The notes below the pieces were generated by a model that had not been told where the DNA came from, ran no database searches, and saw only the letters and a program-made list of their open reading frames with translations. A program made the translations under genes and the position numbers. From positions 321,912 to 385,911 of the forward strand of contig OZ199840.1 of NCBI GenBank assembly GCA_964304625.1: a DNA stretch of 64,000 bases, given 5' to 3'. The stretch is from Kudoa neothunni. Lineage: Eukaryota > Animalia > Cnidaria. The number at the start of each line of letters is the position of its first letter. Within the stretch, counting starts at the first letter, position 1. Shown in pieces: positions 3,420-60,087 of the stretch.

Positions 3420-5465
3420 CAGTCGAGATTGGATATTGCGTGACTGGATATTGCGTAATTAGAGATTTTTAAAGTTATCCTTTAAAGAGAGAAATTTAGT
3501 TTTTTCAAATTGTTATTATCTTATTGTAATGTAAAAATATTTGTTAACAAAAAATTTAAAAAAATTTATTAATACAAAAAGTCTCGTTATTGCGTGGAAA
3601 TTTTTTATTGCGTGGTTGTTAGGCGCAGCGTGACTCGTTATTGCGTGGTTTTTTGTGGTCAATTGGTTTAATTCAGATAGTGTTTTTTCATTATGTCCCG
3701 TGAACAACGCAATATTTCAGAGAAAATGGAAATCATCCATTACTACAATTCAATAAAAACGTTGAAGGGTGCGAAATCAATGACAATTTCCAAGTTTAAA
3801 TTGAGTGGTATAGTAGTCTTCTAATGAATAGTATTGTAAAATCACATTTAAGGTCATTCAACACTTGATAGAATTCTTTCGCACGAAGATAAATTCAAAA
3901 ATACAGATATTGAAAGTAAAAGGAAGAGACATTCGGCAGGCAGATTCAAAAATATAGACGATGAAGTGTATGATTGGTTTGTTAAACAACGGTCGAATGG
4001 TAACGTTCTGTCAGGAGATGCCATTATCAAAAAAGCTTCTTATATTGCAAATGAAAACAAAGTTTCCAATTTTAAAGCCAGCAAGGGATGGCTTGCAGGG
4101 TTCAAGTCAAGATATGGGATAGTTTTCAAAAAGTTCCATGGCGAGGCTGCGAGTGCAGATGTTGCATCTGTCGACTCATGGATTATTGAGAACATTGATT
4201 TGATTAGAGCATATAATCCAAAAGACGTTATTAACATCGACGAAACTGCTCTTTATTATGAGCAGTTACAAAATAGTAGTTACGTTTTAAAGGAGGAAGT
4301 CGGGATTAAGGGGAAAAAATTATCCAAAAAAAGGGTGACTGTTTTACTGTCCTCAGCTTTAAATGGGGATAAGTTCCCATTAGTTGTTATCGGGAAATTT
4401 CAAAATCCTAGATGTTTTAAAAGAGTCAAACACCTCCCTTGTGAATATTATGCACAAAAAAAGTGCATGGATGACTTCTAGTATATTTATCGAAATAATG
4501 AAAAAGTTTAACCGAAGGATGATAAATCAGAATAGAAAAGTCTTAATTTTGTTGGACCAATGTCCAGGCCATCCAAAAAATATTGATTGCTTTGAAAATA
4601 TCAAATTTTTGTTCTTACCTAAAAATACAACTAGTATTTTACAACCCCTTGATTTAGGCATCATTCGCTGCCTTAAAAGCAGGTACAAAAGTTCAATGAC
4701 CGAGCGAATGGTTTTATGCGAAGATTCTATCATAAAAAAATATACATTGCTTGACTCAATGATAACATTAACTAAATGTTGGGAAAGTATTCCGCCGCAA
4801 ATTATTATTAATTGCTTTAAAAAATCAAAAATATTTGGAGGTATTAAATAAAATTACGACAATAAAGTTATTATCAGTTTATAGACCAAGAAGATGTGAG
4901 TGAGATACCTCAAATCAGCAACTGTTCTCAAGGTAATATTTAACGTATACGTAATTAATTTTTTCTAGATGAAATCGAAGATTCAGAAAATATGTTTGAT
5001 GACGATTATGAAGCAACATGCGAGGAAGAAAATAATGAGGACTTATTGCCCATAAGTGACGAATCTGACGATAGCGAATCAATCATTGAAGACATCAAAG
5101 TTTCAATTAATCAAATGAAAAATGCAGTGAACGTTCTGAGGGAAGCTTTTATTAAAGAGGATCCGAGGGGATTGTTTGATTTACATCCCATAATGGACCG
5201 AGTTTAAAAATATCAAGAGAAAGATTCCGACAAACTAAAATTACAAAGCTTTTTCGACAAAATTTGATAAATCACATTTCATTTAATTAAATAATATATT
5301 TATATATAAAAATTTGATTTTCACTAATTGGCATCGGACGTAAACACGAAAAAATCATATTTTATAGTACACTGCGCACGCAAAGGTCTGGATATTGCGT
5401 AAAAATTTTTTATTGCGTGGGTTTTTGTTGGTCCCAGAAACCCACGCAATATCCAATCTCGACTG
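3420..5465 (+). mobile_element. Full-length Tigger/pogo DNA transposon
   Basis: Perfect 23-bp TIR CAGTCGAGATTGGATATTGCGTG at 3420 and its reverse complement ending 5465; TA on both flanks; internal TATTGCGT sub-repeats. Confidence 0.93.
3693..5268 (+). pseudogene. Tigger transposase (CENP-B-type HTH + DDE_1) with two tiny introns and several 1-nt frameshifts
   Basis: FKASKGWL..FK.RY, NIDETALYY, LLDQCPGH, LPKNTTSILQPLD.GII; introns 4841-4884 and 4933-4968 join the DDE ORF in frame to the acidic tail ORF 4992-5207. Confidence 0.85.
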
Positions 5466-8871: not shown

Positions 8872-11800
8872 CTAGTCTCTTTTTTTCTTCAATAGCACGA
8901 TTCCAACTATCGCTACAACCATGACCACAGCAACACACGCAATAATGATTCTATAAAAGGTTAGTTCATGTATCAGCATTTAAGAATGTTTACATAAGTT
9001 TGGTTTTATTCCTAAAAAATATTTAATAAAATAAAAAAATATTACTAAGCTCACCCTGAGCTACTTTTTGCTCCTACGATAATTATAACATTAAATCACA
9101 CTGTGAACAAATAATATACCTTGTTGTATGTCAGCAACGCCAAAAATTGTAGCATCTTCAACATTGTAAACAGTCAAATAATAGTCATTTCCATCAGGTA
9201 AATTATTTATTTTGAATTCTTTACAGGTTACAAAGGCAGTACATCTGTCTACGCTTCTTCCCATGCAAGATTTTACTACGGCATTAGATTTGACACTACT
9301 GTTACGTAACTCCCATTTGCATTTTGATTTATCGTTCATACTGGATGGAACTGTGGTGGTTACAATGAAACTGTCCCCATCACGTGTAATGACGACTGAT
9401 ATTAATTTTGAGGAGTCCGTTGGGTTTACTTGTGGTGCAGCTAATACAAGTTTCGTTTAAAAAATTCTTAATAGAGACATTAATTGTAATACTTGGTTCT
9501 ATGATATGCTCTTGTTGTGAAGATTTTCCGATAGCTGTGACTAAAATTTTGTATGTATTTGCCGCTTCATACTCGGGAAATGTTATGGAACTGCAAGTAG
9601 GATTTGAAGAACAGGTGTTTGCGCTGTTCGCGACATCAGCAAGCTGTGTATCTGAAGTATCTGCGACTGAAGAATTCGCTTCTGACATTGGACCATCATC
9701 TGCTGTCGTCGGTATGGCAATTCTAGCTATGTTGAGATCCGCAGAACTTAAACTGGAAGTAGGAGCTGAAGCGGGTGGTGGTGCTACCGGGGCGGTAACA
9801 GGCGTCGCTACTTCCGACACCACTGGACATGTGTAATAATCTATGTAATCGCTACCAGTTTTCTTCTTTACGATATAACTGCATGTTGCAGTTGGATCCA
9901 CGGAATTTAATCTTGCCTTCAATGACAAACCATCCAATGTGATCTTGTGTGTTATCGTTAACGTTGTTAATGCTATAAAAATTTTAAAGAATAAATTATA
10001 ACTTCAATAACCTGTTTGTATATTTGTGTAATCTTTTATGTCGTAATCCTTATGGGCGATGACCCTGATGTCATAAGGTTTGTTTGGCTCAAGGTTTTCT
10101 ATCGTAACTTGTTCACTGCAAATTCCTCTACACGGGGTGTTGCCATTGCATTTTCGCATGGAAAAAGCTATCCATTCCAGTCGGACTCACCAAATACTCA
10201 CAGGTAGGTTCATTTTTCTTTTGTTCAGCTTCAGTTGCGGTAGCAACCATAGCTGTAAGAGAGACTGTCGTGTCTGTCTTTGTAGGATCAGTAGTTCCAT
10301 ACGCTTTACCATCTCCGATTTCTTTATGAATTGTTATTATTATATAAAATAAATATAATGATTCACTCGTTCTTATGAATATATGTTCTTTGAAACCACT
10401 TGGATCATTAATTCCACCAAATGTAATCTCAATTACGTACGCTTTTCCTGCTGAAAGTCCCTCAATTACCAATTTTGAGCAATCAGTGTTGCAAGTGGTG
10501 CTGCTGCTCTGAGTGGTACATGTTGTGCCGGTTGGGGTGGCTGGCTTTGGTTTATCAGCAAAATAATGTTTAAGAGTACATATATTAATTTGTGGATTAG
10601 TTCCTTCTTTAAATGGGGTACCGTCAAACGAAACGCCAACATTAGTATAAGTAGAAAGAAATCCTCCAGCTGGTTCAGTAATTGCTAATGAAAATAATGA
10701 AAAATTCGTCTTAATGTAAGAATTACCGAATTTAGTTTGCGTGTAACCATCCGGACTATCACCGGTAGCTTTTATGTCGTGATACCTTGTTTGGATTAGA
10801 ATTTTATAAATCTTTTTATCCGCGATGCCATTAAGTTCCACGTACTTACATGGGGCGTAACAATCTTTACCGGCACCACCACAAACGGACGTATATGATT
10901 GATCAGTTGCTGCATTCAAACCATCTTTTAGACGGAACAAACATATTTCAGACGACAAGGAATTAGTGAATTTAATTCCAACTTTGTTTTCAATTTTAGT
11001 TACGATATAAAACTGAGGCTCATAAATGGCTATGTTTTTCTTCATATATTGATTGGGCATATCGTAAAAGAAACTGGGGTAATTTCCGCACTTCACTTCG
11101 TAATGAGGTAACAATAAATCAAAATCAACTGTGTTTGCTGTATTATCATTAATACAATCTGTCCCTTTGTTACCATTTACATATTTAATATCTCTATAAA
11201 TAAATAGGACAATCTACAGGTGCGCAAGTTTTTGCTGCGAATTTCAGCTGCTCATTGTCTTTAGACACAGTTATTTGTGGATTAGCCAACAACGCTATAT
11301 AAATTTATTTATATATTGAATTAAATCGGTATACGTGTTGAAAATCCGAATACTTTTCCTCCTGTTGTTCGACTTCCTCCTGTAACATCCCCGGCGCTAT
11401 TCCCGACATGGACGTATATGTATTTGGTTCTTGGTGATAGCTTTTCATAGGTGATTTTATTTTCATCAGTATTACAAATGACAACACATTTACCAGTAAC
11501 ACTAGTTTCAGATTCATTAACATTAGCAGCGCAGCTAACAATGTCTGTAAACTCAGCTAGTATTGTCTGTCCAGTCTGAGCCGCTGCAATTTCTGCTTCT
11601 TTAGATCGCATTATATAGGCACCTCTGGACATTTCCATAATCTGAACCTCCAAGATTGAGTTTCATTTTGTCTGGGTCAGTGCGTGATCCTTTCACAACC
11701 TGGGTATTTGTCAATGTTTTCGTTGGTGCTGCAGATGCATATGCAAACTTGAGGAATTGTATCTCTAGTAGCATTGGCTATGCTTGATATTAAAACACCT

Positions 11801-20978: not shown

Positions 20979-22461
20979 CAGTGTTTTCGTACAAATTTTA
21001 CAACCGTACCCCCACCCTAATTTCCGCGTTCATTTCGCATCCCCTTCTCCATGTGAATGTCAAGACTCGATTATAGTTTTTCTTTAAGTGCAAAAATAAT
21101 AATACCAATGAAGAATGCCTTAAAATCATATTTATATTATTTTAGTTTATATTTTTATTCCAAATTTCCCCAATTCTAAAATAAATTAAAACTAAAATGT
21201 TTTGGTTAACTCAACTTGTTATGTATAACTGAAAGAGGATGAACATTGTCTTTTCACTCCTCATGACTCAACACCCAATGATTGGAGTCTTTATTCATTC
21301 CTGCTCATATATACCATTTTTATGTAAAGCAATAAATAATTCTAATAAATTATGTTATTATAATTATTCCAAAATATTAGACTCAAAAAATAAATAAAAG
21401 AGTGATACTAAACTATAAAAAATGTGGTCGCTTAGTAAGTTTTGGACTTAAAGGTGAAAATTAAATAAACTAATAAAGATAACCAATTCGTATAGTTCAC
21501 AAGAAACATTATTTCGAAATCAATTGTCATTTAGTATTTATTTGATCTGGAGGCTCTCTTGTTCTCGCCGGGCTTTCATAAGTAATTCAAAGCAGGACAT
21601 TTTATTGGATTATGAAACATGAAAATCGTTTCCGGGGTTTTATGAATTCCAATACTTATTATTTGTATATAACGAAGTCGATAAGCTTGTTTTATATATT
21701 ATCTAGTGCTGAATATATCTAGCGACTTTCATATTCTATATTGGGTCGTATGTTAACTTAAATTTTGAGACAATGAGTTACTAAAAATTTAATAGATTCA
21801 AAAAATATGTCTTCTAAATGTAATTGAATAAAAATAACTAATATACATTGTTAAAACTGTCATTCATTTACTTATGTGTATAAATGAATACTTGTCCCTT
21901 GATTAACCTATATTCTAAAGAACAATTTCGCTTAGATTTATATCAGAGTAAAGATACAAATTCTAAAGTAAAACTTGAAACGTAACAATGAAAACTACAC
22001 AATTAAATGATGGATCTCAAATTTAGACAGAAGACCAAGTTAAAATTACATCGTGATTTTATTTTCATGGATATAGATTATTTCTAAATAGATAAAAATG
22101 CTGAAAACCTAGTTATAGCTTAATCATATAAATATGTTATTCTGAAAGATAACAAGGTTACGATTTTACATGAAAATAGCGATAGTTAGATTTTGTAAGC
22201 TGAACAGGCTTAATATAAACTAGTACCTTAGTGTGCTATTTCGTAAAATCAAACAGAATACGTTATACATTAAATAAATTATCATATCCCATTTTTTGAA
22301 TCGAAACTAATCGATATCAAAACAACTAGAAATATTATTGTACGCATTACGTTCTTACATGATTTAAACGGGGACTAGCTAAAATTACGAAGTGAATATA
22401 TTAAGGTTAATTTTTAAATGTATTCCAGAATGACTCCCGCACCCCTTGTAGGGAAAACCTG
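20979..22461 (+). mobile_element. About 1.45-kb non-autonomous hAT-like element, copy R1
   Basis: Collinear with 28368-29812 and the reverse complement of 47659-49059; ends CAGTGTTTTCGTAC / GTAGGGAAAACCTG. Confidence 0.8.
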
Positions 22462-23209
22462 CTTTAATGGATGAGTAATAATTAAAAATACTTATTTAAT
22501 GTCTTTAACGTTTTTATTTTATTTTCATTGAAACAAAAACGAAAATCGACGCACTAATTTAGCAATATTGTGAATGTAAAACGTACGAATCGATAAAATT
22601 AATGTTTCAAAGTTTACTTGATTACTATGCTTCTAATATTTTTAAATTCTTAATTATTTAAATCTATAAATTAAGTTTATTAGCTCTAATTTTTAATCTA
22701 GTTGGTTTAATTGATTTGATACTAGAGATTTAAAATATTGCGACAATAATTACCATTCGTTAGACATTTTCCAGCATCTAATACAGTATTTTAACTGGTT
22801 ATGTATTTATCTTCAATTGTAGTTAATAAAGAATCAATAAAAAAATTTAAAACTCGACCAATGAACACCTTAATAGCATCTACACAATTAGACTATGATT
22901 AAATAATTAAACTATGAATTGTATACTTGATAAAATTGTAATTCTTAATTATATTCATAAATGTAGTCAACATTGCGATTTTTGTGAATTATACAATAGA
23001 AAACGAAGGTTCGTAATCCCATTGTCGGCCCCAAAACTGATATATACTAAATCCTGCCACGGAAATCGGTTTCCTGTTTCACATTCACATTCGAATACAG
23101 ATTCATTATTTGCTTATGCTCATATTATTTTCGTTTGGTCTTTATACCCGGTTTTCGAAAAAAATTGTTTAATAACTTGAGTAATTAGTACCTAGCCTAA
23201 GTTTTGCTA

Positions 23210-26474: not shown

Positions 26475-28279
26475 AAGTAAACAACCAATTTTCCGTAATC
26501 CTCTCGGGATCATGGAAAAGTTACTGAAAATGCGTCAGTGATGTATTTTCCGTAACTTTCCGCGTGCGCCACAATTAAAAAAACAAACCTGTTTTAAAAA
26601 AAATTCATTTCATTTATACAATCATCTACCTTTATTTAAACAATATGTTATTTTATGTTAAATTTAATTATATTTTTAAATGTGTATGCTGTAATTTTAT
26701 GATGTGAATTCATTATTTCGTTCGGATAATCAATTCCTCTCTGTAGTATATTTTTTCTGCATGTTTAAACATTTAAACGAATCTTTTGATGATATAAATT
26801 CTACCACACGTTCATCTTCATTATCAAAATATATAGATTCAATAATCAAAAGAGTAAGCTTATCAAAGTGTTTTGATGTAGGCATATTGATTTCCTTTTT
26901 AATAATCTCGGAATCTCCAGCTGAGAATTCTTTATTGCTAAAATTAATATTTGATGAACGCTCGCATTCATGGGCTGCAGGAAACCCATATTTCCTGAAA
27001 CAATTAAATACAATATCCTTTGAAACAGCGTCCCAAGGTTCTTTAATTACTAACAATGTTTTAAGCGAATCTTGGGAGGATGTATTTATATCACTGTCAA
27101 TTGCAGCAATATTGTTTTCCATTGAATTATTTTTGTAATTTAATAGGAATAAGAAAATGATTCTATGGTCTAATAGTTGCAAAACGCCAGTTGAATTTTT
27201 TGTAAGTAATATAAGAGAGACATTGGACAAATGAATTTCGGCGTAGCAAGTGGCATTATTAAGAAGTAGCAAAACTTTCTTGTATTTCGTTTTGAATACA
27301 TTGTCAAAATTAGAAGGATATTTGTTAAATGTTTCCCAAATTATCTATTCTTTCCTTTTTGATTTGTATTTTACTATAAATATTTTAGAATTTTTAAAAC
27401 AACACGGTTTTTGTGATTCCCAATCACAAGAGATTCAATGAAAACTTCAGTCATAGATACATGTCGCAAACAGTAATTATTTTTTCGATTTTTTTTCTAT
27501 CGACAAAACATGGCTTTAAAAATAATGGACCTCTATGTTGTTAATAAAATAATGCAGTTGCGTCAAGGTTATGGATACAGTCATCGTTGTTACCTTTGAC
27601 TTATTCATTTTAGATTAGCAATTTCCTACAAAACATTAGCCAACATAAGCAGCATCACTATAGGTAGTGATATTCTTAAATTCCATCGTGATTTAAAACC
27701 AATAAATCAATTAGGGGTCATTACTATGCTTAGGTTCAATTCTTTTGTTAATTGGTTTTATTTATGTATATCATGAGCAGATAGTTCAATTTTTTGTTCT
27801 CTCAAGTAATTCACCCAGTTATATACTAAAGATCAATGTCGTGATTTGAACATGTTTTAAATTTTTTCTCCCTGAAAAAGTCAAGCCAGTTTATAAAACT
27901 CTCTCTCTTCCAAATCAAGATGATATCTAGAGTAGAAATAGAAAGAAGCTTAAATTTACGAAAAGTATTTTTTTATAATACTGTTTAGTATATTTTAAAA
28001 AAATCAATAAATTTATATTTTGGTATTATTATTTCCCCATTTTTAAATTTTCCAAATATTATAAATGTAAAAAAAGGCACATAACTAAATCCGCCAAAAG
28101 CTGAAAAGTTTTGTAAAATCGGTTAAGCGCTAATAATAGGAAAAAACCACTTTCCAATGTTAAATTTTTAAAATTGTTGTAAATTATCATTAAAACCATC
28201 AATAAAATATATGGTTTAAAATAGTAAAATAATATTTTAAAGGAAGTGTCTGAAATTACCGAAAATCGGTTACCTACTG
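26475..28279 (-). mobile_element. Decayed Tigger/pogo element
   Basis: TIR CAGTAGGTAACCGATTTTCGGTAA (reverse complement ending 28279, then TA) with a degenerate partner at 26475; LLLNNATC, LTKNSTGVLQLLD, NCFRKYGF. Confidence 0.8.
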
Positions 28280-28367: not shown

Positions 28368-29812
28368 TAATATTTCCTACAAATTTTACACCCGTATCTC
28401 CATCCTAATTTCCCCGTTCGCTTCGCATCCTCTCTTCCACATGAATGTCAAGACTCAATTATACTTTTTATTTAAGTGTAAAAATATCTCAATGAAAAAT
28501 TTCTTATAACTAAAATTTTTATTATTTTTCTTTATATTTTAACATCAAATTTTCTCAAATACTTATAAAATAAATTAATACCAAAATGTTTTGGTTAATT
28601 AAATTTTCTATGCATAATTGAAAACGGATGAACATTATCTTTTCACTACTCATGACTTAACATTCAATGATTGAAGCTATTATTCATTCCAGCTTATATA
28701 TACCATTTTTAAGGAAGGTAATAAATAATTCTACTAAATTATGTTATTATAATTATTCCAAAATATTCAATTAAAAAAATAAATATAAACGTAATACTAA
28801 TGTATAAAAAAGTATGGTCGTTTAAATAAGTTCTGTACTTAAAGGTGAAAATGAAATGAGCTAATCAAAAATATCCTATTCGTATAGTTCACATGAAACA
28901 TTATTTAAAAATTAAATGTTATTTAGTATTTATTTGATCTGGCGGTTCTCTTGCTCTCGCTGGGTTTTCATAAGTAATTTAATGTAGGACCTTTTGTTGG
29001 GCTATGAAACTTGAAAATCGTTTTCAGAGTTTAATGAATTCCAACACTTATTATTTGTATTTAATGAAGTCGATAAACTTGTTTCATATGTTATCCTGTG
29101 ATGAATAAATCTAGCGGCTTCCTTATTCTATATTGACTCATATGTTAATTAAATTTTGAGGCTGTGGGTTAATAAAAATTCAGTAGATCCAAAAATATGT
29201 CTTCTAAATATACTTGAATAAAAATAACTAATATGTATTGTTAAAATTGGTATTCATTTAATTATGTGTATAAATGAATGCTTTGATCCTTGTTTTACCT
29301 ATACTCTAAAGAACAAATTAACATAGATTTACGTCATAAGAAAATTACAAATTCGAAAGTAAAACTTTGAACGTAAAATAATAAAAACTATACCGTTAAA
29401 TGATGGATCTCAAATTTAGACAGAAGACAAATTTAAAGTATATCGTGGTTTTATTTTCGTGGATTTAGATTATTCCTAAGTAGACAAAAATGTTGACAAC
29501 CTAATTAAAGCTTAATCATATAAATATGTTATTATGAAAGATAATAAAGTTACGATTTTACATGAAAATAGCGGTAGTTAGACTCTGTAAGCTAAACAGG
29601 CTTAATATTAACTATTATCTTACTGCGCTATTAGCTAGAATCAAACAGAATAAATCATCGAATCTAATATCAAAACAATCAGAAATATTATTGTACATTA
29701 CGTCCTTACATGATTTAAACGGAAACTAACGGAAATTATGAAATGAATAAGCTAAGATTAATTTTTAAATTTATTCTAGAATGACTCCCGCATCTCCCGT
29801 ACTGAAACACTG
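28368..29812 (+). mobile_element. About 1.45-kb non-autonomous hAT-like element, copy R2
   Basis: 8-bp TSD GCCTAAAT / GCCTAAAG (28360-28367, 29813-29820); right end GTACTGAAACACTG. Confidence 0.85.
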
Positions 29813-35773: not shown

Positions 35774-37293
35774 ATGAAGTTTTACTTAACAATCTTCATC
35801 TATATTATTTTAACCTTCATACCTTTTTCTTCTCTAAATAGTAATTCAACTTTATAAAAACTCCATTCTCAATAATTTTAGAAAGTACCAAATATGAATT
35901 TAGTAATGAAAAAAATTATAGAATACCGTTAAGATTATATCCTATAAGATATTATCTTGATAAAACGACAGCTACATGCAAAAAATTTGAGTACAGAGGA
36001 GCTGGTGGGATTAACTTCAATAATTTTGCGTCACTAGAAGAATGCAACAAAGAATGTACTCTTACACTTTATTATTTATATATATGATGAATTAGTTGAA
36101 TATGACTATGCGAGCCGTGTTGATGTTTGCACAGATAGTAATACTTCTACAGAAGAACTTAATAACAATGGGGACGAAGATTTCAACGTTTGTGAAAAAA
36201 CTCTCCTCACCAGATATTATTTCAAAAAAGGCACTGGTACTGAGGCAGGAGAATGCAAACCATATAATTATAAGGGATGTAATGAGCCTAAATATTCGTT
36301 TCCAAGTGAAGATGCATGCAAGGGCATGTGCACAAGTAATGTATTATTCATTTGTGGTATTTTTAATTTAAAATAGCGAAAGTATCACCGCTCCCAAAAC
36401 CAAACAAGGTTGACTGCGAAGTGGGTGCGATTTTAACCTCAACTGCAACGGGTGCAGAAAGAGAAATCAAGATCGTACGTGACAGTGAAAAGTCTACATG
36501 TGTCCATGCGATAGTAGACAAAACAAATGGATTACGTGGTGTCTTCGAGTCATTTTCTCAATGCCAAAAGAAGTGTCACGGTAATAAAAATAAATTAATT
36601 AAATAAGATTAATAAATGAATTTAGTTGGTGCCGTCGCAACTAAAAGATGCGAATCTGCCCCATATCAACCAACAACTGAAGGGCACATAACAACTAAAT
36701 ATTATTATAATTCAAAAAATAAATTCTGTATGCAAATGTTGGCGGTCGATATTGAAGTAGATTCAACCAAAAATTATTTCGATACTGCTGGAGAATGTAT
36801 TAGTGCCTGTCCAGCTCGTATGTTTCTGTTATAACCTAAATTATATTATTTAATTTTTAAAGTTAACGACGATCCAACAGAAACCAATTTTCCCGATATA
36901 TCCCCCGTATGCAGCGAACCAAAAGAATCTGGTAATGGAAATGAAGCAAGCACACTGCCAAGATGGTACTATAATGATACACAAAAGGCGTGTAAACGAT
37001 TTGCATATACTGGAATTGGTGGAAACGCGAACAACTTTGAAAGCGAAGCTCTTTGCAATTACATTTGCATTGAAGGAATGATTGAAGTTACTTTACGCGA
37101 ACTAACAACTACTCCGGCAACTACAACTGAGACTACTACAACTTCTACGAGTGACGACGAATCTGAATCAACCTCTTCTGATACCCTTCCTGATTCACCA
37201 GTGGCTGAGGATCTCGATAACCACGAAGATACAACAAGTGAGCACGATCTAGCTGAAGCAGCGGAGGAAATCGAACAGCCGGATGAAGAATAA
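35774..37293 (+). CDS. Secreted protein with five Kunitz/BPTI-like domains and a Thr-rich/acidic tail, copy A (435 aa)
   Basis: Exons 35774-35840, 35882-36055, 36096-36335, 36377-36580, 36626-36817, 36863-37293; phase-1 GT-AG introns of 40-45 nt; signal MKFYLTIFIYIILTFIPFSS; RWYYN..C..F.YTGIGGNANNF.S...C...C. Confidence 0.88.
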
Positions 37294-46281: not shown

Positions 46282-47658
46282 ATTTAAATAAACTAAATTA
46301 TGCGCACATTATACATTCAAATATAAATAGAGGTATTGGGCGAAATTAATGAGTATTTTAAAGTTTATTTTACAAATTATTGACCAAAAATATAAAGACC
46401 TTAATTTTATGGGCAATTTAATTAACGACTAAAGTTCATTAATTTACTAAACAAAATCATTTAGTAATTTAAATAGGACTCAGTTCTATTCACAATCTTA
46501 CGATAATAATTAATCCTTCTAGTTATAAAATTTTTTATCAGTCTACAAGCGATAAAAAAATAAAATCAACCTAAGATGCGTCAAAATTTAAAATATTAAT
46601 TGTTACTCTTTTTTTCAATTTTATAAAGGATATTAATGAGGTTTGAATAATCTGTGCGTTGTAACTTTCGTATTCACTATTTTAACATGATTTCCCTATT
46701 TTTAAATAATTGAAACCTTTCTTTTTAACAAAAATACTCATTAGTTTAAATAAAAAAAATTTGATTAACAAAATATGATTAAATCTAAAATATTACGGTA
46801 TCTCTGGTTTTAAAAATTATAATCATGCTTTAACATCAACTGGTTTTCTTGGAGGAATGCACCCTTTTAAAAATTAACGCACTGTTTGATTTCCCTAAAA
46901 AAATTTCTTCGTATTGAACCATTCTTAGATTAACGAAAACTTTGCGAATACATCGGTTAGATCAAATCGACAAATAATTTCTTATTAACAACATGACACG
47001 TATTGAGAGTGGACTGTATTTTGTACGAAAGCAATTGTGAATAAAATTCTTATACTAAGTATAGAATGCGACGTCGTATATTTTCTTGCAGTATTTATAT
47101 CATAATGAATTATTATTCGCGAAAAAATTATATAATGATTTGAATATTAACCTTAAGGTTTGGGGGTAAGGAATAATTAGGTCACTAAGAACAAAAACAT
47201 TATTTAAAAAATTGTCTTATCAAATTTATAAACTTATCGAATTAGTTATTCCGACTGTTTTGTAAGAAAGTTTAGAAAAACCAACAAATGAGTAAAAACT
47301 TATCGAAACGACGAATATAGTTTCAATCTCAATCGATATATTTGATAAAAAGAAATTTTCACATCTCAGGGATTCCAATGGAGCATAATTTTCATTTAAG
47401 GAGTTATCACAAAAATTTAATTATTTGACAACTCTAAACACATCCTACATTGTTTTTAGTATGTGTATAGAGACGAAAATTATTCCAATATGGCATCAGC
47501 TTATAATCTCAAATTACATGTTTTATTTAAAATGATTACAATCGTTTTCGCTTAAATATACCCCTAATGTATGAAAATAAAAAATGCATCCTAGATAATT
47601 TGGTTACGATTTAAATTTTAAGGGAAATGCTACATCTCTTGTAAATATGACTCTAATG

Positions 47659-49059
47659 CAGTGTTTCAGTACAGGGGGTGCGGAGGTCATTTTAGAATAA
47701 ATTTAAAAATTAATCATAATTTATTCAATTCGTAATTTTCGTTAGTCCTCGTTTAAATCATGTAAGGACGTAATGTACAATAATATTTCTGGTTGTTTTT
47801 ATATTAATCAGTTTCGATTCAAAAATCGGATTTGATAATTTATTCTGTTTGATTCTAGCTAATAGCGCAATAAGATAATAGTTAATATTAAGCCTGTTCA
47901 GCTTACAGAGTCTAACTATCGCTATTTTCATGTAAAATCGTAACTTTATTATCTCTCATAATAACATATTTATATGATTAAGCTATCATTAGGTTGTCAG
48001 CATTTGTATCTACTTAAAAATAATCTATATCCATGAGTAAAAAACAACGATGTAATTTTAACTTTGTCTTCTATCTAAATTTGAGATCCATCATTTATTT
48101 TCATAGTTTTTATTATGTTACGTTCCAAGTTTTACATTCAAATTTGTGCCTTGCCTCTGATATAAATCTATGTTAATTTATTCTTTAGAATATAGGTAAA
48201 ACAAGGATCAGAGCATTAATTTCTACACATTCATAAATGAATACCAATTTTAACAATACATATTAATTATTTTTATTCAAGTATATTTAGAAGACATATT
48301 TTTGGATCTGTTGAATTTTTATTAACCCACAGCCTCAAAATTTAATTAACATATGAATCAATATAGAATAAGGAAGCCGCTAGATTTATTCAGCACAGAA
48401 TAACATATGAAACAATCTTATCTACTTCATTATATACAAATAATAAATATTGGAATTCATTAAACTCTGAAAACGATTTTCATGTTTCATAGTCCAATAA
48501 AAGATCCTGCATTGAATTACTCATGAAAACCCAGCGAGAGCAAGAGAACCGCCAGATCAAATAAATACGAAATAATATTTGATTTTTAAATAATATTTCA
48601 TGTGAACTATACGAATTGGGTATTTTTATTTGGCTCATTTCATTTTCACCTTCAAGTACAGAAATTATTTAAGCGACCATACTTTTTATAGTTTAGTATT
48701 ATGTTTATATTTATTTTTTACGTCTAATATTTTGGAATAATTATAATAACATAATTTATTAGAATTATTTATTACTTTACATAAAAATAGAATATATAAG
48801 CAGAAATGAATAATAGCTACATTCATTGAATGTTAAATCAAGAGGAATGAAAAGATATGGTTCCTCCGTTTTCAACTATGCATAGCAAATTGAGTTAACC
48901 AAAACATTTTAGTTTTAATACATTTTTCATTGGTATTATTATTTGTATATTGAAATAAAAAGTATAATTGAGTCTTGACATTCATATGGAGGAAGGGGTG
49001 CGAAATGAACGCAGAAATTAGGATGGAGGTAGGGATGTAAAATTAGTAGGGAAACATTG
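47659..49059 (-). mobile_element. About 1.4-kb non-autonomous hAT-like element, copy R3 (inverted)
   Basis: CAGTGTTTCAGTAC...GTAGGGAAACATTG; reverse complement of R2 and R1, closest to R2. Confidence 0.85.
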
Positions 49060-52860: not shown

Positions 52861-53989
52861 AAAATTATACAATATATGACTTATTTATGCTAACTTAAAT
52901 GTATTAAGAAAATGCGAGTTAGGCCAAAATTATAATTTAAAAGAAATATATCTAGACTTAAACGAGGTTATTATTTGAATGTTTCCCATCGATTACTGAG
53001 TGAAAACTAAAATGTTGAAGCATGCATATTGTAATTCCCGAGTACCGCTGACGCCCCAAGGCGTGTTATTAGGAAATTGTTAAAATTAAAACTATTGTTA
53101 AATTTTTATTTGTTACCATATTCTAAAATCATGAAAAGTTGAGTCATGTTTAAGCCGGGAATTTTGGTTGGGCTGAACAAGCCGAACTTAAGGGATTGGA
53201 TACTTCTCCATTACCCAAGTTTCATACCAAAATGACATTATGATTTGAAATTATTGTAATTTTTAATTATATTTTTTAGATATTGATTCCGGATAAAATT
53301 TAGAATAATACTTGTCATTGTTTTATGGTATTAATTTGATATTTTCTTTTTTAAATGGTATTTACTGGAATTTTATGTGTTTCATTGATAGAAATATTTT
53401 AAGTTACATTTTATTAGACTGCGCTAGATGAGTATTATTTAGTTACATCATACTTTTTAAATATATCGTTAGTAATAATCCCATTTAATATCATAAAACG
53501 TAACAACGTGGTTATGATCATACTTTTCTTGAATAAACAAATATTTGACAATAGTGAAATGATAAGACGTCTGTTTCTAGTACGTTTTTTACATATTTAA
53601 TATTTATTTGAATTAGATTTATGGTCATTACATAAAAATAACCATCATACAAGAATTTATCCCTTCCTATCTGTGTTCTTATAATGATATATCATTGTTG
53701 GTGTTTTTATCTCTCATTAGAAAAGAAAAATATCATTTTAAAATAAATAGTAATCACAATCATAATAGGAAATATAACAAGCCAAATACCCTAAAACAGT
53801 TTTTGAGTTTGGTGAGTTATGGCCACGCCCTGAATTTTTGTTAGGGTGCATCCGTAATAGAGGGCGAAATTTCGTCATGTCAAAGTTCTAATTAATTTAC
53901 CACATCGACGCGGGCTAGATGCTAAAAAATTGGTTGAGATTAATTTTTTAATATCATGAATAATTATTATCTAGTCTAAGTTTTGTTAT

Positions 53990-54083
53990 CTGGCAATGAA
54001 TGAATCACTATATCAATAATTGAGTAAAATTCGGGTCAATTGTATTCCGAGCTATCAATTGGTAAGTCATTTAGTTGTCAACC
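53990..54083 (+). promoter_or_regulatory. Conserved upstream element (copy 4)
   Basis: Same approximately 95-bp block. Confidence 0.65.
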
Positions 54084-57076
54084 ATGAAAATAGCTGGATT
54101 TCTCTACCTTGCGTTAGGTACCTTCCTGAGTTAATTTTAATATTAAAGCTAATATAAGTTCAGGTGTTTTAATATCAACCACAGCCAATACTAATGAAAG
54201 TTCAAATCCTCAAGCTGCACCTGTAGCCCCAACAAAAACGTTGGCATATCAAATTGAGAAAGATGCGACAAGTAGCGCAGACCAAATTAAAATCAAACTT
54301 GGAGGCTCTGAATATGGAACTGGCAAAAAATGCCTTATACGTCGATCTAACGAAGCAGAAATCGCGGCGACTACCTCTGGTCAGGTACCAGCAGCTGAGT
54401 TTAGAGACATCGACACTTGTGTTGCTAAAGTTAGTGATTCGAGTGTTATTAATAAATGTGTTGTCGAATGTAATACTGACGCGAATAAAATCACCTACGA
54501 TAAACTCTCACCAAGGACCAAATACATATATGTCTACGTAGGCACCGTTGCAACTGAGGTTCAAAATAAAGTTCAGGGAGCAGAAGCAAAAGTATTCGGA
54601 TACTCAATACGTATATTATATTTTTAATTTGAAAATAAATTGAATTTAGCATTGTTGGCTAATCCACAAATTAGCGTGTCTACAGAAACCAATCAGTTGA
54701 AATTCGCAGCAAAAACATGTACACCTGTAAATTGCCCTATTTTTTACAAAGATGTCAAATACGCCAATGGTGCCAAGGTGGAAAGTTGTAATGCTGGGAA
54801 TTCGGAAAACATAGTGGATTTTGATTTATTGCTTCCGCATTACGAAGTAAGATGCGAAAATTATCCCAGTTTCTTTTACAATATGCCCAATCAATATATG
54901 AAGAAAAACATAGATATTTATAAGCCTCAGTTTTATATTGTTGCAAAAATTGGAAACAAAGTGGGAATTAAATTCACCAATTCCCCGTCGTCTGAAATAT
55001 GCCTATTCAGCCTTAAAGATGATCAGCAGACGACGAGCAATCCACCATACATTTCTCAATGTGGTGGAACTGACAAAAGTTGTTATGCACCATGTAAGTA
55101 CGTCGAACTCAATGGCATTGAGGGAAAAAAAGTTTATAAAGTTTTAATCCAAACGAGGCATCACGACATAGAAGCTACTAGTGGTGATTTGAAAGGTTAC
55201 GAACAAACTAAATTTGGTAATCCTTATATTAGGACGCATTTTTTTATATTTTTTTAGCATTTACTGAACAAAATGGAGAATTGCTGTCAGCCTATACGAA
55301 TATTGGTGTTACGTTTGAAGATGCCACATTAAAAACAAGAACTACTCCAATAATGAATACGTGTACACTTGATCATTATTTTGCTGATAAACCAAAGCCA
55401 ACCACTCTAACTGCCACAACATGTGATGATACTAGTACAACTAATAACAGATGCAACATTGATTGCTCAAAATTGGTAATTCAGGGACTTTCAGCGGGAA
55501 AAGCCTACATGATTGAGATCTCATTTGAAGGCGCTAGTATTACACAAGGTTTTAAAGAACATATATTCATAAGAACGAGTGAATCATTATATTTATTTTA
55601 TATAATAATAACAATTCATAAAGAAATCGGAATTGGAAAAGCATATGGAACTACCGATCCTACAAAAACAGACACAACAGTCTCTCTTACAGCTATGGCT
55701 GGGCTTTCATCGGGAGAAAAGAAAGATGAACCTACCTGTGAGTATTTGGTGAGTCCGGCTGGATTGGGCAGCTTTTACTATGCGAAATGTAATGGGAACA
55801 CCCCGTGTAGAGGAATTTGCAGTGAACAAGTTACGATAGAAAACCTTGAGCCAAACAAACCTTATGACATCAGGGTCATCGCACATAAGGATTACGACAT
55901 AAAAGATTACACAAATATACAAACAGGTTATTGAAGTTATAATTTATTCTTTAAAATTTTTATAGCATTAACAACGTTAACGATAACACACAAGATCACA
56001 TTGGATGGTTTGTCATTGAAGGCAAGATTAAATTCCGTGGATCCAACTGCAACATGCAGTTATATCGTAAAGAAGAAAACTGGTAGCGATTACATAGATT
56101 ATTACACATGTCCAGTGGTATCGGAAGTAGCGACGCCTGTTACCGCCCCGGTAGCACCACCACCCGCTTCAGCTCCTACTTCCAGTTTAAGTTCCGCAGA
56201 TCTCAACATAGCAAGAATTGCTGTGCCAATGGTAGCAGATGGTGGTCCAATGCCTGCAGCGAAATCTTCAGTCGCAGATACTTCAGATACACAGCTTGCT
56301 GATGTCGCGAACAGCGCAAACATATGTTCTTCAAATCCCCTTTGCAGTTCCATAACATTTCCCGAGTATGAAGCAGCAAATACATACAAAATTTTAGTCA
56401 CAGCTATCGGAAAATCTTCACCACAAGAGCATATCATAGAACCAAGTACTACAATTAATGCTTCAATTAATGTCTCTATTAAGAATTTCTTAAACGAAAC
56501 TTATATTAGGTACACCAAAAGTAAACCCAACTGACTCCTCAAAATTGATATCAGTCGTCATTACACGTGATGGGAACAGTTTCATTGTAACCACCACACT
56601 TCCAGCCACTATGAACGATAAATCAAAATGCAAATGGGAGTTACGTAACAGTAGTGTCAAGTCTAATGCGGTGGTAAAATCTTGCATGAGAAGAAACGTA
56701 GACAGATGTGCTGCCTTTGTGACCTGTAAAGAATTCAAAATAAATAATTTACCTGATGGAAATGATTATTATTTGACTGTTTACAGTGTCGAAGATGATA
56801 CAATTTTTGGCGGTGCTGACATTCAACAAGGTATATTATTTGTTACCAATATAATTAAATGTTATATATCGTAGGAGCAAAGAGTAGCTCAGGGTGAGTT
56901 AAGTAATATTTTTTTATTTTATTAAATATTTTTTAGGAATAAAACCAAACTTATGTAAACATTTTTAAATGTTGATATTTGAATTAACTGATTTTAGAAT
57001 CATTATTGCATGCGTTGCTGTGGTTGTGGTTATTGCAATAGTTGGCATCGTGGTATTGAAGAAGAAAAGGGATTAA
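54084..57076 (+). CDS. Variable multi-FN3-like type I membrane protein, copy 4 (intact)
   Basis: Exons start at 54084, 54164, 54650, 55258, 55624, 55966 and 56510, followed by the two micro-exons and the TM exon; frame open throughout; ends KKKRD*. Confidence 0.9.
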
Positions 57077-57240
57077 ATTAATTTTTGTTAACTATAGTTT
57101 ATAGGTAATATTTATTAATAAAATTTTTCGATCACGTAACATTATTTGATATTTTTAACCATTGGTTGAATTTATTGTTTTTTGAAATTTGCATGAGGCT
57201 TTTGAGAGGAAATATGATCTCCGATATTTTTTTATAATTA

Positions 57241-58210
57241 AAGTAAACAACCAATTTTCCGTAATCCTCTCGGGATCATGGAAAAGTTGCTGAAAATGCG
57301 TCAGTGATGTATTTTCCGTAACTTCCCGCGTGCGCCACAATTAAAAAAATAAACCTGTTTTAAAAAAAATTCATTTCATTTATACAATCATCTACCTTTA
57401 TTTAAACAATATGTTATTTTATGTTAAATTTAATTATATTTTTAAATGTGTATGCTGTAATTTTATGATGTGAATTCATTATTTCGTTCGGATAATCAAT
57501 TCCTCTCTGTAGTATATTTTTTTCTGCATGTTTAAACATTTAAACGAATCTTTTGATGATATAAATTCTACCACACGTTCATCTTCATTATCAAAATATA
57601 TAGATTCAATAATCAAAAGAGTAAGCTTATCAAAGTGTTTTGATGTAGGCATATTGATTTCCTTTTTAATAATCTCGGAATCTCCAGCTGAGAATTCTTT
57701 ATTGCTAAAATTAATATTTGATGAACGCTCGCATTCATGGGATGCAGGAATCCCATATTTCCTGAAACAGTTAAATACAATATCCTTTGAAACACCGTCC
57801 CAAGGTTTTTTAATTACTAACAATGTTTTAAGCGAATCTTGGGAGGATGTATTTATATCACTGTCAATTGCAGCAATATTGTTTTCCATTGAATTATTTT
57901 TGTAATTTAATAGGAATGAGAAAATGATTCTATGGTCTAATTGTTGCAAAACGCCAGTTGAATTTGTTGTAAGTAATATAAGAGAGACATTGGACAAATG
58001 AATTTCGGCGTGGTAAGTAGCATTATTAAGAAATAGCGAAACTTTCTTGTACTTCGTTTTGAATACATTGTCGAAATTAGAAGGATATTTGTTAAATATT
58101 TCCCAAATCATCCTTTCTTTCCTGTTTGATTTGTATTTTACTATAAATGTTTTAGAATTTTTAAAACAACGTGGTTTTTGTGATTTTCAATCACAAGAGA
58201 TTCAATGAAA
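57241..58210 (-). mobile_element. Duplicate of the left part of the Tigger remnant at 26475
   Basis: Near-identical to 26475-27443 and at the same distance from the gene's stop codon. Confidence 0.85.
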
Positions 58211-58561: not shown

Positions 58562-60087
58562 ATGAAAGTCTTTTTACTTATCTTTATCTGTGTTGTCTCT
58601 GCATACATCCCTCTTTCTTTTCTCACTGGCGCTAGTAGTTTAATCGAATGTGATTACGTTTATATTAATTTTAGCATATACAACATATGATTTTGATTCT
58701 ACAAAAAATCATAGGCTTCATTTACAATCTTTTCCTACCAGATATTACCTTCATAAAGATACAGCTACATGCAAAAGCTTTTCGTACAGAGGAGCCAGCG
58801 GATCTAACTTCAATAATTTTGCGTCGTTAGAAGAATGCAACAAAGAACGTAACATTACAGTTTATTTTATATTTCTATATTAATTTAGTTGAATATGATT
58901 ATGCGAGTCGAGTTGGTGCTTGCCAGGCTGTAGGAAACCCTAGTTTGAACAGTGACCTTCAGAGAAATGGTGATGGTTCATTCAACGTTTGTAACAAATC
59001 GCCCATCGACAGATATTACTTCAAAAAAGGATCTACTTCAGATGATGCAGGAACTTGCCACACATGTAAATATAAAGGATGCAATGAGCCAAAGTACTCA
59101 TTCCCAAGTGAGGAAGCTTGCAAGGGCACGTGCATAAGTAATGTATTATTCATTCGTGCTATTTATAATTGAAAATAGCAACTGACGACGCCTACAAAGT
59201 ACCTAACATGGTTGACTGCGAAGTGGGTGCCATTTTAACTTCAAATAATGCTGCTGCAACAGAAATCAATATCGTGCGTGACAACGAAAATTCCACATGT
59301 GTCCATGCGATCGTAGACAAACAATCAGGAGTACGTGGTGTTTTTGAGTTATTTTCTCAATTCCAAAAGAAGCGTGACGGTAATAAAAATAAATTCATTA
59401 AATAAACTTAATACGTAAATTTAGCTGATGAAGCAACAACTAAAAGATGTGATGTGAATCTGCTGCATACCAACCAACAACCGAAGGGCATATAACAACC
59501 AAATATTACTACAATTCCACAAATAAATTCTGCATGCAAATGATGGCAGTTGATATTGAATTGGACTCAACCAAAAATTATTTCGATACAGCCAGAGAAT
59601 GTATTAGTGCATGCCCCGCTCGTATGCTCCTTTTATTAGTTAGAATTATACAATTTAATGTTTAAAGTTAATGATGATGAAACAGTTGTTAATTTGCCGG
59701 ATATCCTCACTGTATGTAGTGACCCCAAAAGAACCTGGTAATGGAAACGAAGTAAGCACATTGCCAAGATGGTATTATGATGAGATAGAAAAGTTGTGTA
59801 AAAGATTTACATATACTGGAATTGGTGGAAATGCGAACAACTTTGAAAGTGAAGCCCTTTGCAATTACATTTGCATTGAAGGTGTTAATGCAGTTATTTT
59901 ACCCGAACCAACAACTACCCCATCAACTAAAACTGAGACTACTACTACTGCCACTACAGCTTCTGAAAGTAACGAAGAACCTGCACCAAGCAATACTGCA
60001 ACAGAACCTGATGATGATGAGGAAGAGGCGGTTGATCAACCAGAAACGGAAGAGACACAACCTGAAGCAGAAGGTGTCATTTCTTGA
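58562..60087 (+). pseudogene. Five-Kunitz secreted protein, copy B (probable pseudogene)
   Basis: Same exon structure as copy A; 5-nt duplication GATGT near 59450, +1 near 59724, and two Cys lost in domain 3 (SQFQKKRD vs SQCQKKCH). Confidence 0.8.

Follow-up and report, generated by a model that had tools for sequence, protein, structure and literature searches.

How can one gene resemble several of its relatives, each over a different part of its length? The question is raised by a 64,000-nucleotide (nt) stretch of Kudoa neothunni DNA (hereafter the window; G000:C3:321912-385911), which belongs to a 40.26-Mb assembly of four contigs, three of them chromosome-sized and one mitochondrial. Self-BLAST of the window reveals five copies of a gene encoding a predicted surface protein: copy 1 (L006; 8703-12073, reverse strand), copy 2 (L003; 23163-27443, forward strand, intact), copy 3 (L005; 42054-45427, reverse strand), copy 4, and copy 5 (L032; 62799-64000, forward strand, truncated at the window end). 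Copy 4, the subject of this analysis, has the same orientation as copy 2 and is inverted relative to copies 1 and 3. Its repeat unit, delimited by self-BLAST and genome-wide matches, spans 53883-58210 on the forward strand and consists of the gene, some 200 nt preceding it, and a 3' flank common only to copy 2 and to L002, a copy beyond the window; among the window copies, 57240-58210 is homologous to copy 2 alone. Over its whole length copy 4 is 87% identical to copy 2, 84% to copy 3 and 83% to copy 1 in the self-comparison. An earlier note on this DNA had proposed that copy 4 was pieced together from copies 1, 2 and 3 by segmental conversion or recombination. We find that it is a patchwork of stretches matching at least six sister genes, and we place at about 85% the probability that it is a real mosaic arising from repeated short-tract, non-crossover interlocus gene conversion among linked paralogs.

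The family extends well beyond the window. A genome-wide match search finds at least 43 places in the genome that match it, and 14 full-length copies form a 270-kb cluster at G000:C3:186-462 kb. The alignments used throughout comprise 31 copies and exclude distant members with 68-74% identity to exon 3 of copy 4, so the family is larger than this set; such members were encountered at G000:C3:1361616-1473450, C3:3514530-3515180 and C1:3329772-3330092.

Read in the 5' to 3' direction, with all tracts on the forward strand, copy 4 is first nearest to copy 3, over a tract at 53981-54142 that takes in the proximal upstream DNA together with exon 1 and some of intron 1 at 96.3% identity (99% by sliding comparison at 54027-54125), with six differences, all of them non-coding. 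The next tract, 54143-54556, covers nearly all of exon 2 and is nearest to L002 (95.9%, versus 55-78% to the window copies). L002 (G000:C3:302839-306983) lies outside the window, 19 kb upstream, and this partner was hence invisible to a reading confined to the window. An older tract at 54716-54938 is nearest to L008 (G000:C3:457863; 93.7%). The two exon 3 peptides previously assigned to copy 3 are indeed present there, but L008 carries them as well and at the DNA level is the closer match. A stretch private to copy 4 (54940-55450) has a genome-wide maximum identity of 79%, and it is followed at 55452-55553 by a tract nearest to the inverted copy L007 (G000:C3:232998; 95.1%).

From 55554 to 55652, a segment that runs from the last part of exon 4 through the complete intron 4 into the beginning of exon 5, copy 4 is nearest to the inverted copy 1 (96%; 95% by sliding comparison at 55562-55662) and about 76% identical to copy 2 and L004. 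The 45 nt of intron 4 (55579-55623) are the exact reverse complement of 10322-10366, and the identity with the copy 1 intron that had been reported therefore holds letter for letter on the opposite strand. The copy 2-like segment that had been seen after this intron maps to a short tract at 55653-55725 (98.6%; sliding identity 96% at 55662-55756), whose peptide is also present in L004. Across 55785-56155, where exon 5 ends and, after intron 5, exon 6 begins, copy 4 is nearest to copy 1 and L004 (98.9%), with a sliding identity to copy 1 of 99-100% at 55805-56155, in agreement with the match originally placed at about 55800-56200. A short tract nearest to L009 (G000:C3:290375) at 56156-56264 (98.2%) is weakly supported alone. 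The copy 2 affinity that had been traced from about 56330 to beyond the 3' untranslated region (UTR) corresponds to a long tract at 56317-57960, which carries the rest of exon 6, exon 7, the transmembrane exon, the 3' UTR and flank at about 98% identity, with no differences at 56678-57155 and a sliding identity of 100% at 56550-57150. Beyond it, 11 consecutive informative sites at 58012-58124 mark a switch to an L002-like non-coding flank. Each peptide quoted in the earlier note is present exactly in the copies named; PMVADGGPM, cited as a likeness to copy 2, does occur in copy 2, but it is common to eight copies and is no marker of that gene.

Similarity of this kind might be produced by convergent or purifying selection on the protein, with no exchange of DNA, and framework blocks containing invariant cysteines are indeed conserved in all copies. 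However, such selection cannot account for the silent sites. Non-coding and third-position differences amount to 0-4% within tracts, whereas for the same pairs outside them the figures rise to 14-22% at non-coding sites and 21-29% at third positions (14-29% over silent sites taken together). The tract at 55785-56155 has no difference at its 39 intron sites and 4 among its 110 third positions. Inside tracts, neither intron 4 nor intron 5 shows any difference, and an extra partner switch lies within non-coding, transposon-derived (pogo/Tc5) flank. Because silent sites and introns are near-identical only inside tracts, it is DNA that was transferred, silent sites included, and the original contention that identical introns are beyond the reach of protein-level selection is borne out. 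The probability that selection alone created the patchwork is negligible, and we regard that account as refuted by the silent-site data.

The statistical support for the mosaic comes from three kinds of test. A Sawyer-type permutation test was applied to the 2,011 polymorphic, gap-free columns of the 31-copy alignment, in which the global 95% limit for a run of identical polymorphic sites is 65. Copy 4 shares runs of 281 sites with copy 2, 149 with L004, 121 with copy 1 and 103, 81 and 65 with L002. The run shared with copy 3 is 59 sites long (pairwise p 0.001, global p 0.12); the likeness to copy 3 in the upstream region and exon 1 thus stands on identity (96.3%) and on its segment tree, while its run is significant only in the pairwise sense. 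The pairwise homoplasy index (PHI) was 0.553, compared with 0.660 +/- 0.003 after permutation, with 0 of 500 permutations as low (z ~ -42). Since run and PHI tests can both be inflated by rate heterogeneity, maximum-likelihood trees were also built for six segments of copy 4. Its sister is L005 in the first (ultrafast bootstrap, UFBoot, 98), L002 in the second (100), L008 together with L025 in the third (86), and, in the further segments, L007 (100), L006 (98; 100 when L004 is added) and L003 (100). Six segments therefore have six sisters, as expected from the short-tract exchange between paralogs that had been proposed. Whether one tree might nonetheless fit all windows was examined by approximately unbiased (AU) tests, in which the data of each segment reject the trees of all other segments (p <= 6e-4). 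A single history for copy 4 is rejected by the permutation, PHI and segment-tree/AU tests alike. No single gene tree describes these genes, and both annotators and phylogeneticists should treat them with corresponding caution.

Copy 4 is not exceptional within its cluster. A copying-model parse assigns to every cluster copy 4-8 tracts of at least 97% identity with several partners, and few or none to the dispersed copies; all 14 cluster copies are mosaics. Copies 1-3 are indeed partners of copy 4, as the earlier note held, but the pool of donors takes in all 14 copies of the cluster, every one of them itself a mosaic. Of 91 comparisons between cluster members, 31 are significant; none of the 238 that set a cluster copy against a dispersed one is, and dispersed copies compared with each other give 4 of 136. 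These last four include two within 0.42 Mb, one 10.5 Mb apart on C1 and one across contigs. Exchange in the cluster is thus restricted to linked copies. The type of a segment is also independent of the sequence that flanks it. At 55554-55652, copy 4 pairs with copy 1 (96%) and L004 with copy 2 (99%), with about 76% identity between the two pairs, and immediately upstream of this segment copy 1 shares 98% identity with L004.

Clustering by itself would also suit a history of hybrids born of reciprocal recombination, whether between tandem copies or within introns (unequal crossing-over or exon shuffling). One breakpoint, 54142/54143, does fall in intron 1, and duplication by unequal exchange did take place at some point: a pogo/Tc5-type transposase fragment (DDE_1; Pfam E 5.4e-9) lies at 57479-58111 on the reverse strand, in the 3' flank, and since the flank with this fragment is common to copy 2, copy 4 and L002 alone, these three share a duplicated backbone. 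An exact-protein look-up of the transposase open reading frame (ORF) in this flank returned no record. However, at least ten switches occur within 4.3 kb, each tract being nested between sequence of other origin, and the majority of breakpoints lie within exons. Three partners of copy 4, namely copy 1, copy 3 and L007, are inverted, and a crossover with any of them would invert the intervening DNA. Moreover, orientation makes no difference across the cluster, where 16 of 42 same-orientation pairs and 15 of 49 inverted pairs are significant, an equal rate. Because three partners are inverted, tracts nested and breakpoints mostly exonic, non-crossover conversion fits the data and crossing-over or intron-mediated shuffling does not; we consider the latter improbable as the source of the patchwork.

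The gene conversion that we favor would begin with a break in one copy, repaired from a neighboring copy on the same chromosome arm. Repair would copy exons, introns and flanks alike, in tracts ranging from about 70 to 1,600 nt or more, and overlapping events of different ages would leave each cluster copy as a distinct combination drawn from a limited set of segment types. The net outcome is the reshuffling of variants in the variable 5' exons and, as in concerted evolution, the homogenization of copies in the more similar 3' exons. That the events differ in age is indicated by tract identities spanning 94-100%. The adjoining short tracts of differing donors at 55452-56316 do look like multi-template repair, and the entire patchwork might be ascribed to a single complex repair episode in which the template changed several times, of the synthesis-dependent strand annealing (SDSA), break-induced replication (BIR) or microhomology-mediated BIR (MMBIR) type. 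However, identities from 93.7% to 100% point to different ages, and the donors are mosaics of one another with other boundaries; a single event is therefore unlikely in our estimation, with repeated conversion the preferred explanation. Polarizing the transfers by the extents of nested tracts was attempted and dropped, since the partner copies are themselves mosaic.

Several points weigh against this explanation or limit it. Non-reciprocal transfer is a presumption of this account, and the shortest tracts (52-110 nt) are individually non-significant. Other points concern the assembly. Phase across shared tracts of at least 370 nt rests on the assembly, and the public run from which read-derived unitigs were taken (X1) is possibly the assembly's own sample. 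One family member, L024 (G000:C2:6643281-6646379), contains about 20 private single-base insertions over all exons, which look like unpolished long-read patches and not ordinary pseudogene decay, and L011, L014 and L034 contain 200-N gaps. Short-read polishing could also have pushed tracts of 95-98% identity towards 100%.

These last features are what would be expected if the mosaic were a chimera of assembly or polishing, with paralogs mixed by a noisy long-read consensus or by short-read correction. Set against this, X1 unitigs with zero mismatches to copy 4 cover 54110-54545, 54516-54661, 55202-55489 and 55573-55685; each of the four bridges a tract junction, at a single-copy depth of about 5-6, and the sole variant X1 contig in the copy 4 region is the L007 paralog. 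Polishing cannot create tracts from a background that is 15-25% divergent, a level too high for mis-mapped paralog reads to overwrite 100-400 nt. Furthermore, copy 4 retains all of its open frames and splice sites, and similar mosaics occur in 14 of 14 cluster copies and are absent from equally similar dispersed copies. An assembly chimera is unlikely, and we give it a very slim chance. Copy 1 has private +/-1 indels in exons 2, 3 and 5, and copy 3 has single-base deletions in exons 5, 6 and 7; altogether, copy 1, copy 3 and L007 carry 3-6 private +/-1 indels each, which break exon frames. These breaks may be real defects, making the genes defective donors, or they may be assembly errors.

What has the exchange done to the family? 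It had been suggested that it generates combinatorial variants, which holds for the variable 5' exons, but exons 6-7 show net homogenization. Synonymous divergence (dS) among intact cluster copies is 0.46-0.61 in exons 2-4 and falls to 0.14 in exon 6 and 0.10 in exon 7. Dispersed copies have a dS of 0.30-0.33 in exons 6-7. Because the drop occurs in the cluster but not in dispersed copies, the 3' half is being homogenized, while in the variable 5' exons deep lineages persist and are reshuffled. Segment exchange among clustered members thus explains how both diversity and a conserved 3' half are maintained, and such diversity may be of benefit. The ratio of non-synonymous to synonymous divergence (dN/dS) is 0.26-0.61 in individual exons and approaches or exceeds 1 in local windows; in the older copy 4 tracts, first and second codon positions show no deficit of changes that postdate transfer. 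This suggests weak constraint but falls short of proof of diversifying selection.

Interlocus (ectopic) gene conversion and concerted evolution are well known from clustered families such as the chimeric 'type I' NBS-LRR clusters of plant resistance genes, MHC and KIR. The cluster described here resembles them in the patchwork of tracts, tens to hundreds of nt long, between linked paralogs, in its incongruent segment trees and silent-site co-conversion, in the confinement of exchange to physically close copies, and in the mixing of variable parts alongside the homogenization of conserved ones. It differs in its protein, which is predicted to consist of cysteine-rich FN3-like modules with a single-pass anchor, and in its host, which has an AT-rich, 40-Mb genome with introns of 34-46 nt. 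Diversified immune-type receptors of invertebrates provide another comparison, including the snail FREPs, sea-urchin Sp185/333 and Dscam with its FN3/Ig domains. By analogy, the present family would share with these its extracellular modules of Ig/FN3 fold, variable patches among framework residues, multicopy clusters and mosaics attributed to recombination or conversion, although beyond the FN3 fold there is no sequence relationship.

A third parallel concerns antigenic variation, in which segmental conversion is widely described, for instance for mosaic VSG genes of Trypanosoma brucei, Anaplasma msp2, Borrelia vlsE and Plasmodium var (e.g. PMC1934917, PMC5093961). The likeness lies in a large family of variable surface proteins, located here mainly near contig ends (at which no telomere repeats were found), in new segment combinations, and in some apparently defective partner copies. 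Unlike programmed systems of the VSG, vlsE or msp2 type, in which one or a few expression sites are served by a store of silent and often truncated donor cassettes, this family consists mostly of complete genes, each equipped with an upstream region, a start codon, a signal peptide and a transmembrane anchor of its own. The start codon and upstream region are present in 31 of 31 aligned copies, 27 of the 31 are free of private frame-shifting indels or multiple frame breaks in exons 1-7, and cassette-only copies number none among the 31. With complete genes in the majority, the family lacks a cassette archive. Likewise, neither an expression site, nor a truncated cassette archive, nor evidence of somatic or clonal switching was found among copies known from genomic sequence alone. 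One might still envisage the C3 cluster as a dedicated cassette-shuffling system that builds new combinations of hypervariable FN3 loops in a repertoire of surface receptors or antigens, with a logic like that of VSG/var or resistance-gene clusters and possibly operating somatically too. If so, about 14 linked genes, some of them defective, would be continually recombined by conversion. We regard this extension as doubtful. Regardless, the C3 cluster is a site at which ongoing diversification can be sought.

Conversion between paralogs is textbook knowledge; the surface-protein family is undescribed. Searched against 1.84 billion representatives, a profile of exon 3 recovers just 13 proteins at E < 1e-10; these are without exception exon-sized ORFs from one Logan assembly (SRR31175926) and one metagenome of the European Nucleotide Archive (ENA; ERZ795007). 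The Logan contigs (L038 and L039) have a GC content of 17-21% and no DNA-level similarity, and the metagenome contig (L040; 35% GC) shows 71-78% identity to exon 3; these three, the family's sole relatives from elsewhere, could be used as outgroups. The family accordingly appears as a large, fast-evolving, lineage-restricted set of surface proteins with almost no relatives in public protein data, and the value of the locus lies in the combination of a new family with an unusually clean, quantifiable example of conversion.

The predicted gene model of copy 4 (54084-57076, forward strand) was derived from the sequence and from conservation in the 31 copies. It comprises exon 1 (54084-54117), containing the start of a signal peptide, exons 2 (54164-54610), 3 (54650-55216), 4 (55258-55578), 5 (55624-55926), 6 (55966-56520) and 7 (56555-56830), a 19-nt exon (56875-56893) and a transmembrane exon at about 56997-57076. 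The introns, of the GT-AG type and in phase 1, measure 34-46 nt apart from the last, which has about 100 nt; every exon frame is open and all splice sites are kept. The predicted protein has a signal peptide, cysteine-rich beta modules, a Pro/Ser/Ala linker, a transmembrane helix and a short basic tail, with one or two putative FN3-like modules per phase-1 exon. Exon 3 has eight cysteines that are invariant across copies, and variable patches lie between the conserved framework residues. After the 19-nt exon, two candidate acceptors occur within 56875-57076. Use of the near one (56937) would lead to a stop after seven codons and hence to a predicted secreted form, while the far one (about 56997) would give the transmembrane helix with a KKKRD tail. 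Through alternative splicing the gene might thus yield both a secreted and an anchored form.

Exons were searched singly rather than as a spliced protein and were joined only to count stops. Exon 5 of copy 4 scores 21.7 bits against Pfam fn3 (PF00041), below the 25-bit cut-off, and an fn3 match at E <= 0.01 is found in exon 5 of all 28 of 28 paralogs, the best at 4.8e-6; the other exons have no Pfam match. The AlphaFold2 (AF2) model of exon 5 has a predicted local distance difference test (pLDDT) score of 84.5 and forms a beta-sandwich of the seven-strand FN3 fold. Its top Foldseek matches in the PDB are nearly all FN3 domains or monobodies, with template-modelling (TM) scores of 0.54-0.66 and a probability of 1.00, at E-values of only about 1e-3. 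The corresponding model of exon 3 (pLDDT 60.6) is too poor for use, and a feature search of the ESM Atlas with exon 3 gave weak FN3-like leads only (0.78).

A few other elements deserve mention. The mitochondrial contig (G000:C4, 18,219 bp) has a GC content of 42-45%, compared with about 31% in the nuclear window; a weak COX1 match was its only one, and ARAGORN in bacterial mode detected no tRNA, which points to an unusually divergent mitochondrial genome. Within the window, pogo/Tc5-type fragments (DDE_1, HTH_Tnp_Tc5) are also found at 26730-27272 (reverse strand) and 3966-4481 (forward strand). Adjoining copy 4 is a Kunitz/BPTI-domain ORF at 59671-60087 on the forward strand (Pfam E 1.7e-15), whose neighborhood has diverged repeats (77-87% identical) 22.8 kb upstream, at 35873-37148. 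The Kunitz and pogo sequences, with a weak BEL/Pao-like match, indicate an animal, and of the nematode and arthropod markers sought (SL1, Col_cuticle_N and Chitin_bind_4) none was detected. A 1.3-kb repeat, 84-87% identical between its occurrences, flanks copy 2 at 21178-22466 and 28524-29812 and recurs in inverted orientation between copies 3 and 4 at 47654-48968; it is probably a transposon.

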